A stretch of 64,000 nt of DNA from Macrostomum hystrix (Eukaryota; Animalia; Platyhelminthes): NCBI GenBank assembly GCA_950097015.1, contig CATNEN010000017.1, positions 1 to 64,000 of the forward strand. Direction: 5' to 3'. Positions within the stretch are counted from its first letter, which is position 1, and the number at the start of each line of letters is the position of its first letter. The notes under the pieces were generated by a model that searched no databases, had not been told where the DNA came from, and saw only the letters and a list, made by a program, of their open reading frames with translations. Of this stretch, positions 41,886 to 44,225 are shown one piece after another. The position numbers were made by a program, and so were the translations under genes.

Positions 41886-44225
41886 TTAATTGTTAAACAA
41901 ATTTTCTTTTAGTTTTTCGCACCGTTCCGCTATGACGGCAGTCGTCAGCTCCGGGGACCTCCAGCCAGTGATTGCCTCGATCAATTTGGCCGCGGTCTCT
42001 ACCAGGCTGGCGACGCTACGCTGTTCTGGCGCGGAGTAGGCAAAGTGGACTAGCAGGCAGGCAACGGCCTGTAGCAACTCGCCGCTGCTCACTTTTGGGC
42101 CACTGTACGATTGGCGGGTGGGCCTGGTCGCCGCCTCGAGTCTACTGTCAGATACTATGCTTGCGTAAGTCCGTTGTGGTTGGCTAAGGCAAGGCTGATC
42201 CAGCCGGATACCTAAGGGTTGTTGGCCAATACCAGAAGGCAAGATTCCTATTGGTTCCTGGAGCAAGGAGTTTGGTTGGTTGGCTGGTGGATTAGCCAAT
42301 GGCGTTTGGCGAGCGAGTTGGGGTCGATTCCGCTGGACCCAGGCTTGGACTCGCTGGTTCGCGGCTATATAAGCAGGACAGTTCTTGTCCGTTGATCTGT
42401 GAGATCCGTGGCAATTTGGACAGCGCTGGTTCTCAACCGGACAGCCTTGATTTTGCTCATGTGAGTAGCCACAGGTCCGGCAGCGCGACTCGCGAGTACA
42501 TTGTCTGGCCAGGTGGCCAAAGGCCTGGCAGTTGTGGCATTGTGTCGCTCGCAATGGTGGTGGTGCGCGTGACTCTTCGCATTTGTACAGGAAGTACCCA
42601 ATTTTTATTCCTTGGGTAAGACATCTCGACAGAGTGCCGTCATTCAGCGTGAATGCTCGAACAAGAGTGGTGGGCTCGTTGGTTGCGGCAGACTTAATGC
42701 GTACCACACCACTAATGCGAGGTTCTGATTCCTTGATGCGTTCCAGGAATTCTGGCAGGTCGATCTCCCGATTGACATTCTTGATGATGAAAGAGTGGCT
42801 TTTCGGGGCAGAAATGCTGGTCGGTAGTCTTGGCTTGGCATTTGGTGGTGCATCCGGCTTGCGCAAGGGCAGGCGGCGCTCAACACCTTGACCGTCTATC
42901 GTGGGGGTCTTGAGATCGTCAGCCAGGAGGTGGTGAGCCCCCTGGTAGTCAACCGCGAAAACTTTAAAACCGGTCGTCAGATAGCAGCGCTGGACTGAGC
43001 GAATGCGGATTTCAGGGAAGTTCGCCTTCAGAAACTTCTCAAACCTGAGCTCGTCTGGGAGAAAGTTGCTGAAGGTGAACAGTACTGGCGCGATCTTAGC
43101 TTGAGACTGAGTTTGGCTGCGAGGTGATGAGTGCCGCGAGCCGGCGACCGAATGGAAGGAGCCACCTTCCGATGTTGCGGCAGCGGCTGCAGCGGCCCCG
43201 AGGCTGGCCGGATTAGCTACCGGAGAAGCTACCTCATTTGGAACTGGAGGAGCTGACTCAGGGTCAGAGATACCTTGGCCTTGTAGAATGGTGATATCAT
43301 GGATGGCTGGTGAGGTGACACGGAAGGTGAGGTTGATTCGGAGGTCTTTGACGGATGGATCGCGAAGAAGAGCGTGCTGTGTGTGGGTTTGGGTGTCGCC
43401 TTTCATGATGAGCAGCGACCCGTGTGGCAGAGATTGTGTGAAGAGAGTGATGCCAGATGATTTGGAGCGGATGCGGAATTCGCGTGAAGCACCGATGGAG
43501 ATGGAAGCGATAGTTGGATTTTTGCCGAGCTCAGGTTCGTCATCGGAGTGAAAACCAATTGAGTCAGCACCTGTTTCATAGAAATTTACTAGACAAGAAT
43601 TGAAGGCAGGAAGTCCTAGTTGAGAATGTAGGAGACTTGCAAGATTGGAGATTGCCGGATGCCAGTTGGAGTTGCCCTGGATTGTCTCACCAGAGTACGT
43701 GTAAGGTGGGCCGTACCAGAAGATTTTTCGAGGTTCGGCTCGTCCATTGGTGTGATGGCGTGAGGCGAGAGGCAGAATGTCAGCAGTGAGAGTTGTGAGC
43801 AGATCGTTGGCAATGTCTTTGAAGGCGTGAGGATAAAACGAGATTGGGCATGAGTCGCCGATGAGGAGCTTTGTGAAGAAACCTTTTGTTGAGATGAGTG
43901 GACTGTTGTAGGCTTGGTGTTGAGTTTGTGAAGAAGAAGAGTCAGATTGAGCAGACTGAACACCTTTGGACAGCTGTGCCTGTTCTTCAGAAGGTGCCCT
44001 ATTTGAGGAGACGTCGGAAGTGTCCATAGGACTAACAGTCACCTGAGCGCTGCCGTTCTTTGGAATTGTTGTGGCATCGTCGGCTGGCTTCGGTATTCCC
44101 GATTGTCGCCTGGCCTTCTTGTCGTCTGGCTCTAGAGTCGCCTTAGCGGTGGCGTTGGCCGACTGGCGTTGGCGCTTATCCTTCTGCTGCTGCTGCTTTT
44201 GCTGTTGTTGCTTATTTTGTTGCAT
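41886..44225 (-). CDS. Retrotransposon ORF1 (779 aa): Q-rich N-terminus, AlkB-family 2OG-Fe(II) dioxygenase, RRM-like region, three Cys/His zinc knuckles
   Basis: AlkB motifs: NSCLVNFY..GADSIGFHSDDE, IASISIG, HGSLLIMKG, QH, RINLTFR. Knuckles: CHNCQAFGHLARQC, CRTCGYSHEQNQGC, CPNCHGSHRSTDKNC (42378-42539). Confidence 0.95.
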   Translation of the reverse strand: MQQNKQQQQKQQQQKDKRQRQSANATAKATLEPDDKKARRQSGIPKPADDATTIPKNGSAQVTVSPMDTSDVSSNRAPSEEQAQLSKGVQSAQSDSSSSQTQHQAYNSPLISTKGFFTKLLIGDSCPISFYPHAFKDIANDLLTTLTADILPLASRHHTNGRAEPRKIFWYGPPYTYSGETIQGNSNWHPAISNLASLLHSQLGLPAFNSCLVNFYETGADSIGFHSDDEPELGKNPTIASISIGASREFRIRSKSSGITLFTQSLPHGSLLIMKGDTQTHTQHALLRDPSVKDLRINLTFRVTSPAIHDITILQGQGISDPESAPPVPNEVASPVANPASLGAAAAAAATSEGGSFHSVAGSRHSSPRSQTQSQAKIAPVLFTFSNFLPDELRFEKFLKANFPEIRIRSVQRCYLTTGFKVFAVDYQGAHHLLADDLKTPTIDGQGVERRLPLRKPDAPPNAKPRLPTSISAPKSHSFIIKNVNREIDLPEFLERIKESEPRISGVVRIKSAATNEPTTLVRAFTLNDGTLSRCLTQGIKIGYFLYKCEESRAPPPLRATQCHNCQAFGHLARQCTRESRCRTCGYSHEQNQGCPVENQRCPNCHGSHRSTDKNCPAYIAANQRVQAWVQRNRPQLARQTPLANPPANQPNSLLQEPIGILPSGIGQQPLGIRLDQPCLSQPQRTYASIVSDSRLEAATRPTRQSYSGPKVSSGELLQAVACLLVHFAYSAPEQRSVASLVETAAKLIEAITGWRSPELTTAVIAERCEKLKENLFNN

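Follow-up and report, generated by a model that had tools for sequence, protein, structure and literature searches.

We analyzed a 64,000-nucleotide window of the flatworm Macrostomum hystrix genome (contig CATNEN010000017.1 of assembly GCA_950097015.1, positions 1 to 64,000), which consists of a tandem ribosomal DNA (rDNA) array with a period of 11,645 bp. One of the spacers in this array is occupied by a long interspersed nuclear element (LINE), and the first open reading frame (ORF1) of this element encodes an AlkB dioxygenase domain. The initial annotation of the window had proposed that AlkB lies in frame in a LINE ORF1, ahead of an RRM-like region and CCHC zinc knuckles, and we found that sequence, profile, structure and genomic context agree on this arrangement. 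The element and its main coding parts, including an apurinic/apyrimidinic endonuclease (APE) and a reverse transcriptase (RT), are as follows:

37755..44931, minus strand: full-length LINE of the APE type, 7177 bp, occupying one of the five rDNA spacers (comparison with an empty unit, insert between 37754 and 44932; junctions read directly)
41886..44225, minus strand: ORF1, 779 aa, with a disordered N-terminus, AlkB, a linker, two RRMs, three CCHC knuckles, a second linker and a helical C-terminal domain (ORF call, Pfam, AlphaFold2)
43299..43883, minus strand: AlkB domain, a 2-oxoglutarate (2OG)/Fe(II) dioxygenase of the ALKBH2/3 type, ORF1 aa 115-309 (Pfam, phmmer against the PDB, HMM envelope, AlphaFold2, Foldseek, residue conservation)
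38954..41806, minus strand: ORF2, APE endonuclease and RT without RNase H; the frame is open from 41806 and its first ATG is at 41698 (Pfam, frame reading)

The domain had been placed at 43315-43750 on the minus strand, which corresponds to ORF1 aa 159-304. Pfam detected AlkB there, with PF13532 (2OG-FeII_Oxy_2) matching aa 170-302 (E=9.2e-29, 101.5 bits, cut-off 31.2); the HMM envelope at 43299-43883 is somewhat wider. AlkB copies from sister elements scored 78-110 bits on the same profile. A phmmer search of PDB sequences retrieved human ALKBH3 (E=1.3e-30), ALKBH2 (3.7e-19) and Escherichia coli AlkB (about 1e-5). Chance does not account for matches of this strength. The motifs named in the initial annotation were all found at their given positions, namely PRKIFWYG at aa 165-172, NSCLVNFY at 209-216, H226-S-D228, H284, and RINLTFR at 296-302. 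Motif positions and alignment likewise showed that the expected catalytic and 2OG-binding residues are all present: the Fe(II) ligands are H226, D228, and H284, and the 2OG/substrate residues are N214, Y216, R296, and R302. These seven residues are also identical in ALKBH3 and in the bacterial references.

We modeled ORF1 with AlphaFold2 on a 59-sequence alignment, and the pLDDT exceeded 90 over aa 118-305. Foldseek aligned ~200 residues of the model to complexes of ALKBH3 with single-stranded DNA (ssDNA) at TM-scores of 0.80-0.87 and 34-36% identity. TM-scores were 0.82-0.84 for ALKBH2, 0.65-0.70 for E. coli AlkB, and about 0.6 for ALKBH5. Both the double-stranded beta-helix core and the N-terminal nucleotide-recognition part of the AlkB fold are there, and the ~200 aligned columns span the whole catalytic cores of ALKBH3 and ALKBH2. 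The domain is thereby confirmed as a full AlkB of the ALKBH2/3 type. It resembles human ALKBH3 and ALKBH2 in fold (31-36% identity over the ~200 residues), in the HxD...H iron triad, in the RxxxxxR 2OG clamp, and in the N/Y residues common to both. Whereas these are stand-alone host enzymes, the AlkB described here forms one part of a gag-like retrotransposon protein.

To find sister elements, we combined a word-indexed search with a phmmer scan of the entire set of 1.84 billion representative proteins. Few proteins had AlkB together with the gag half, and eleven matches had an E below 1e-30. All named AlkB-ORF1 matches came from Macrostomum lignano, and the remainder came from Logan assemblies of a few sequencing projects. 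An exact-sequence look-up returned no record of the window ORF1, nor of the protein P0003. Contig L001, from an M. lignano assembly, encodes a 938-aa ORF1 with AlkB followed by an APE-RT ORF2 that is 44% identical to the window ORF2. In contig L009, ORF1 with AlkB is followed by a 123-aa ORF and a 948-aa APE-RT ORF2, and in L018 (M. lignano) the AlkB ORF is followed by decayed APE and RT fragments. Five further contigs (L002, L011, and L015-L017) have an AlkB-ORF1 followed by further coding sequence at the contig end; the downstream ORF of L002, the only one of these that was scanned, has an APE domain. AlkB was thus present in all sister lineages that we found. An extra ORF of 123-124 aa without a Pfam match was also seen downstream of ORF1 in the lineages of P0143 and P0144 (L009:4346-4717, L010:3167-3538, L016:3269-3643, and L017:3177-3551); that of L009 sits between ORF1 and ORF2.

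One AlkB protein was linked to a retroelement of another class. In L008:3134-7083, a 569-aa AlkB protein (P0004; PF13532 E=2.7e-31) is followed, 108 bp downstream, by an ORF of 710 aa that matches RT and GIY-YIG weakly, that is, a Penelope-like element on a single Logan contig. This suggests that the AlkB module may have been exchanged between retroelement classes, a reading that rests on one contig for which nesting or chimerism is possible. Several other AlkB proteins were rejected as transposable element (TE) cases because they have no TE domains: the spider protein P0012, P0185 (PRP39 HAT repeat), P0208 (metallophosphatase), P0006, P0158, and P0246. A scan of contigs restricted to prokaryotes yielded bacterial AlkBs at 41-47% identity, which were used as tree references only.

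We constructed a maximum-likelihood tree of 88 AlkB domains, including 12 borne by retroelements. All 12, representing six diverged lineages, formed one clade (support 98/92), with the Penelope-linked domain of L008 at its base. The metazoan ALKBH3 clade (100/93), the M. lignano protein P0164, and the bacterial groups all fell outside this TE clade, on a backbone without resolution. A loop insert is present in four named ALKBH3s and in P0164 and is missing from the TE domains. The earlier description of the domain as ALKBH2/3-like therefore stands for sequence, profile and fold and does not extend to membership in the metazoan ALKBH3 clade: the TE AlkBs lie outside it and lack its loop insert, and strict orthology to metazoan ALKBH3 is not supported by these measures. 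The tree supports a single acquisition of AlkB by retroelements. Forcing the TE domains and P0164 into one clade was not rejected (approximately unbiased test, p=0.17), and a host ALKBH3-like gene and a bacterial source are equally possible as donors. P0164 (also P0288; BOX15_Mlig032459, 263 aa) is itself a candidate host ALKBH3-like gene with the loop insert, and in the tree it branches separately and not within the metazoan ALKBH3 clade.

We then compared constraint along ORF1. Synonymous sites were saturated between pairs of lineages (pS 0.66-0.93). In each of three independent pairs, the ORF1 segment with the lowest proportion of nonsynonymous differences (pN) was AlkB (0.21, 0.25, and 0.33 vs 0.28-0.58 elsewhere), and in P0002/P0142, the pair where dS can still be estimated, its dN/dS was at most 0.11. 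AlkB is therefore the most constrained part of ORF1 and does not evolve neutrally. At the residue level, we checked 14 catalytic, 2OG-contacting or family-conserved positions, and none varied among the TE copies spanning the domain, the one exception being N298S in the P0148/P0286 lineage. On this comparative evidence, the AlkB domain is maintained by selection and almost certainly catalytically competent. AlkB folds bind ssDNA and RNA, and ORF1 proteins need chaperone activity, so the fold could in principle have been kept merely as an extra single-strand nucleic-acid-binding or chaperone domain. We regard this as improbable, since Fe(II) ligands and 2OG arginines that stay invariant in all lineages despite saturated synonymous divergence are not expected of a pure binding module. 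The same data bear on whether the fusion is an artefact or a dead passenger, arising from a recent chimeric capture of host mRNA or from misassembly and having no function. Nothing except the rarity of such fusions speaks for this, and it is effectively refuted: the domain is in frame inside an element bounded by target-site duplications (TSDs), it occurs in at least six diverged lineages in independent NCBI assemblies as well as Logan run assemblies, and it is under purifying selection.

The part of ORF1 downstream of AlkB contains the following modules:

42870..43088, minus strand: RRM-like domain 1, aa 380-452 (AlphaFold2 secondary structure, Foldseek tandem-RRM matches)
42573..42797, minus strand: RRM-like domain 2, aa 477-551 (AlphaFold2 secondary structure, Foldseek)
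42381..42539, minus strand: three CCHC zinc knuckles, aa 563-615 (Pfam zf-CCHC for the first knuckle, motif positions, conservation)
41886..42092, minus strand: C-terminal three-helix region, aa 712-779 (AlphaFold2, pLDDT 63-74, moderate confidence)

The RRM-like region and zinc knuckles of the initial annotation thus resolve into two RRM folds, recognized by AlphaFold2 and Foldseek, and three CCHC knuckles, recognized by Pfam and motifs. Both RRM-like domains were modeled with the beta-alpha-beta-beta-alpha-beta order. A separate model of aa 376-640 had a mean pLDDT of 85.6 and matched U2AF65, Pub1, hnRNP A1, and HuR in Foldseek (E about 1e-6). The Cys/His columns of the knuckles are invariant across 13 ORF1 relatives, and the ORF1 model has disordered linkers at aa 29-108, 314-375, 455-473, and 635-711. 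Homologues of the RRM/CCHC half without AlkB were found in other organisms (the Rotaria protein P0021, P0149, and P0160).

The RRM folds stand right upstream of the CCHC knuckles, as in Type I LINE ORF1 proteins. Because AlkB precedes two RRM folds, three knuckles and a helical tail, we consider this protein a Type I ORF1 with an added enzyme; judged from the predicted structure, it is Type IB in the scheme of PMC4120745, plus an extra N-terminal module. Its C-terminal half, with two RRMs and three CCHC knuckles, is standard for Type IB, and an N-terminal accessory module has a parallel in Type IC, where the module is PHD rather than AlkB (PMC4120745). The ORF1 domains catalogued in that work are RRM, CCHC, PHD, esterase, coiled coil/CTD, and zinc finger/leucine zipper, with no AlkB or other dioxygenase among them. 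In the full-text literature we could not find a description of an AlkB-bearing LINE or Penelope-like element (Repbase and subscription journals were outside the coverage). AlkB is apparently a new accessory domain for LINE ORF1, and an earlier description is possible.

The position of AlkB within an ORF1 protein bears on what it may do. The lesions 1-methyladenine (m1A) and 3-methylcytosine (m3C) stop reverse transcriptases. We lean, with moderate confidence, towards the AlkB of this ORF1 being a cis-acting demethylase that repairs lesions of the m1A/m3C type in the element's own RNA or complementary DNA (cDNA). ORF1 would coat its own RNA in cis and, because ORF1 proteins bind their own transcript, would hold the tethered AlkB on the template. 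There, AlkB would oxidatively remove N-methyl lesions or marks on the Watson-Crick face (m1A, m3C and similar) from the template RNA, the single-stranded cDNA intermediate, or both. Since methylated bases block RT, their removal would protect the synthesis of full-length cDNA. ALKBH2/3-type enzymes remove m1A and m3C from single-stranded nucleic acids, and viral AlkBs repair both with a preference for RNA (PMC2553587). The ALKBH2/3-type fold of the model favors repair of this type over erasure of N6-methyladenine (m6A) or 5-methylcytosine.

The element is comparable in this respect to plant RNA viruses (Flexiviridae and others; PMC2553587, PMC544882), which are likewise selfish RNA-templated replicators with their own AlkB in a polyprotein. 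Their AlkB has proven, RNA-preferring m1A/m3C repair activity, which is the mechanism that we propose for the LINE. Unlike the viral domain, which belongs to the replicase of plus-strand RNA viruses, the LINE domain is carried by the nucleic-acid-binding ORF1 of an animal non-LTR retrotransposon. The only earlier retrotransposon-encoded AlkB found in our literature search is that of an orchid (Phalaenopsis) Ty3/Gypsy element, which is active in vitro in m6A RNA demethylation (PMC9289625). It is also an AlkB-type dioxygenase; there, however, a plant LTR element carries it as a separate extra ORF, whereas here it belongs to a LINE, is fused to the gag-like ORF1, and is of the ALKBH2/3 type.

The orchid enzyme raises the alternative that the LINE AlkB acts in epitranscriptomic counter-defense, erasing an m6A-like mark from the LINE transcript so that it escapes decay or silencing mediated by host readers. 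AlkBs of TEs and viruses that are active on m6A exist (PMC9289625, PMC9452765), the same role has been proposed for the orchid Ty3/Gypsy and potyvirus AlkBs, and mammalian L1 is reported to be affected by m6A (PMC7873242). The fold and sequence argue otherwise, being of the ALKBH2/3 type (TM-score 0.80-0.87) and not close to ALKBH5 (about 0.6), the dedicated m6A eraser among the PDB matches. We therefore consider an m6A role unlikely.

The insertion site provides further evidence on possible substrates. Within the rDNA array, the genes for the large subunit (LSU), 5.8S, and small subunit (SSU) rRNAs lie on the minus strand, and every spacer contains a U1 snRNA gene. Each spacer also contains a 35-nt spliced leader (SL) exon followed by GTAAG, with 5 copies in the window, so that the 18S, 5.8S, 28S, U1 snRNA, and SL RNA genes are all co-oriented in each 11.6-kb unit (window 1-64000). 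The 35-nt sequence is identical to the published SL of M. lignano (PMC8629364), and the rRNA genes of the window are 94.6-98.8% identical to those of the published M. lignano assembly. One of the five SL genes is occupied by the LINE and the other four units are empty. The insertion site is made up as follows:

44932..44946, minus strand: TSD, 5' copy, CAGAATCTTTGCCGT (unit comparison and junction reading)
37740..37754, minus strand: TSD, 3' copy, followed by AAAGA and then SL RNA +1 (unit comparison and junction reading)
37700..37734, minus strand: SL exon (35 nt, then GTAAG) of the SL RNA gene that is targeted; it lies outside the element (5 window copies; PMC8629364)

The TSD is a perfect 15 bp, and the blast matches overlap by 15 bp at empty-site positions 26095-26109. 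The LINE is co-oriented with the rRNA, U1, and SL genes. As the 3' end of the element is followed by the TSD, AAAGA, and SL +1, the insertion precedes the SL RNA gene by 5 bp. An rDNA unit in L001 likewise carries its element between U1 and SL (LSU, U1, element, SL, SSU). The 5' junction of this element comes after ...GCCGT, as in the window copy, and AAAGA and SL +1 again follow the 3' copy of its TSD. The window copy and L001 were thus inserted at the same nucleotide in two genomes, with TSDs of 15 and 21 bp, respectively, and the earlier hint of an SL/rDNA target proved right at the junctions of both. Because two lineages with 44% ORF2 identity share one position in two genomes, we regard the family as site-specific; for the clade as a whole, two cases are suggestive of specificity for the SL gene. 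No SL or rDNA flanks were found in the contigs of the other AlkB lineages. Retrotransposons at SL genes are known from trypanosomatids (CRE, SLACS, and CZAR) and from Caenorhabditis elegans (NeSL-1); their endonuclease is restriction-like, and their insertion point falls inside the SL exon. The Macrostomum family shares their site specificity for SL RNA genes, but its endonuclease is of the APE type and its insertions lie 5 bp upstream of SL +1.

This setting raises the question of whether AlkB acts on DNA rather than on the RNA template, either repairing or conditioning ssDNA at the integration site, a highly transcribed SL/U1/rDNA spacer, or treating nascent cDNA, for example where m3C or m1A stalls second-strand synthesis. 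DNA-bound ALKBH3 and ALKBH2 are the structures that the model resembles most, and both lineages with readable flanks target one heavily transcribed site. In addition, M. lignano has kept DNMT1/3, and DNMTs make m3C as a by-product (PMC9246332). However, ORF1 proteins are primarily RNA-coating, AlkB is tethered to RRM/CCHC modules, and the targets of L009, L018, and the Penelope-linked copy are not obviously SL or rDNA. A DNA-side role is in our view doubtful. The residence of the element within the rDNA-U1-SL unit could also point to manipulation of the host, in which AlkB would demethylate host tRNA, SL RNA, snRNA or rRNA and thereby change, to the advantage of the element, translation, trans-splicing or local conditions at the SL/rDNA locus. 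ALKBH3 acts on tRNA m1A/m3C. A diffusible effect in trans would be hard to select for in a low-copy element, and we consider host manipulation very improbable.

ORF2 gave further information on the element. With its N-terminal APE and RT, ORF2 identifies an APE-type LINE, and the 15-bp TSD and the four empty units in the window mark the copy as a LINE insertion. Pfam matched RVT_1 (E=2.8e-43) and Exo_endo_phos_2 (E=4.8e-12), and no RNase H domain was detected in ORF2 by the Pfam scan. The RT matched the structures of L1 ORF2p and R2. Outside the family, no ORF2 match exceeded 30% identity; the nearest ones are mostly unnamed, and some have RNase H. From its first ATG, ORF2 encodes 914 aa (41698..38954), and the spacer from ORF1 to this ATG is 187 nt. 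The frame between 41698 and 41806 (minus strand) encodes the conserved N-terminal APE motif ILHLNCNN, with IGHLNCNK as its L001 counterpart. No in-frame ATG, GTG or TTG was found upstream of the ATG at 41698 in the frame open from 41806. Either ORF2 would start unconventionally, by re-initiation or at a non-AUG codon, or the start codon was lost in the window copy. In L001, an ATG is present upstream of the APE motif.

Returning to cis repair of the element's own RNA or cDNA, a number of points weigh against it. We infer both the substrate (RNA or DNA; m1A/m3C or another modification) and the benefit to retrotransposition. The evidence for expression is weak: transcription, transcript ends, and use of the SL promoter found no firm support in the short contigs of two runs. 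The run of unknown type yielded fragments across ORF1, eight of them at >=99% identity, and from the run guessed to be RNA came one piece of 268 nt, with 5 differences. An ALKBH3-like gene (P0164) appears to be present in the host already, which makes the element's need for AlkB puzzling, and M. lignano has been reported to have ALKB2 (PMC9246332). The substrate preferences of ALKBH3 may not transfer, because the TE clade lacks the ALKBH3 loop and lies outside the metazoan ALKBH3 clade. Finally, ORF2 of the window copy has no in-frame start upstream of the essential APE motif, and this copy may be impaired or reliant on unconventional initiation.

The conserved AlkB in ORF1 would imply that retrotransposition is genuinely hindered by chemical modification of, or damage to, RNA or cDNA, to a degree that selects for a self-encoded eraser. 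It mirrors what is seen in plant RNA viruses and one plant LTR lineage. More broadly, we tentatively propose that methylation or alkylation of bases in the template RNA or cDNA limits LINE retrotransposition in these flatworms, and that an ALKBH2/3-type enzyme, acquired once and passed between APE-LINEs and a Penelope-like element, is a counter-measure. If true, the ORF1 ribonucleoprotein of this family would be the first of any LINE to contain a catalytic activity that repairs nucleic acids or erases their marks, and host-TE conflict in animals would gain a previously unrecognized layer. The question can be tested in M. lignano, a transgenic model flatworm, with a compact element that inserts specifically at a known site. 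An ALKBH2/3-type enzyme tethered in a ribonucleoprotein and paired with RT could also interest users of AlkB for clearing RT blocks in RNA sequencing.

The remainder of the element consists of its untranslated regions (UTRs):

44226..44931, minus strand: 5' UTR, 706 nt, directly downstream of the displaced SL promoter region (junction reading; SL from PMC8629364)
37755..38953, minus strand: 3' UTR, about 1.2 kb, without poly(A) (junction reading, UTR comparison)

The insertion leaves the upstream (promoter) region of the SL gene abutting the 5' end of the element, so the SL promoter could plausibly drive transcription of the element. The element begins with CGGTCTC (44925-44931), the same 7 nt with which the SL RNA begins (37728-37734), both on the minus strand; at the 5' end of L001, the match to the SL start is limited to CG. 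The window copy is intact, with both ORFs open and a perfect 15-bp TSD, and is apparently recent.

The 3' UTR contains a GC hairpin motif consisting of GAGCCCC, a loop of up to 5 nt, and GGGGCTGA, at about 37807-37823 in the window. The same motif was found at about 14530-14550 in L001 and at about 8990-9012 in L009; the UTRs of the three lineages are otherwise unalignable. The hairpin lies 40-90 nt from the end of the 3' UTR in all three (measured to the contig end in L009) and is a candidate RT recognition element. In the rDNA unit of L001, the LSU rRNA gene is interrupted by about 2.8 kb (L001:1048-3830) at LSU model position about 1888-1891, presumably by another rDNA-specific insertion.

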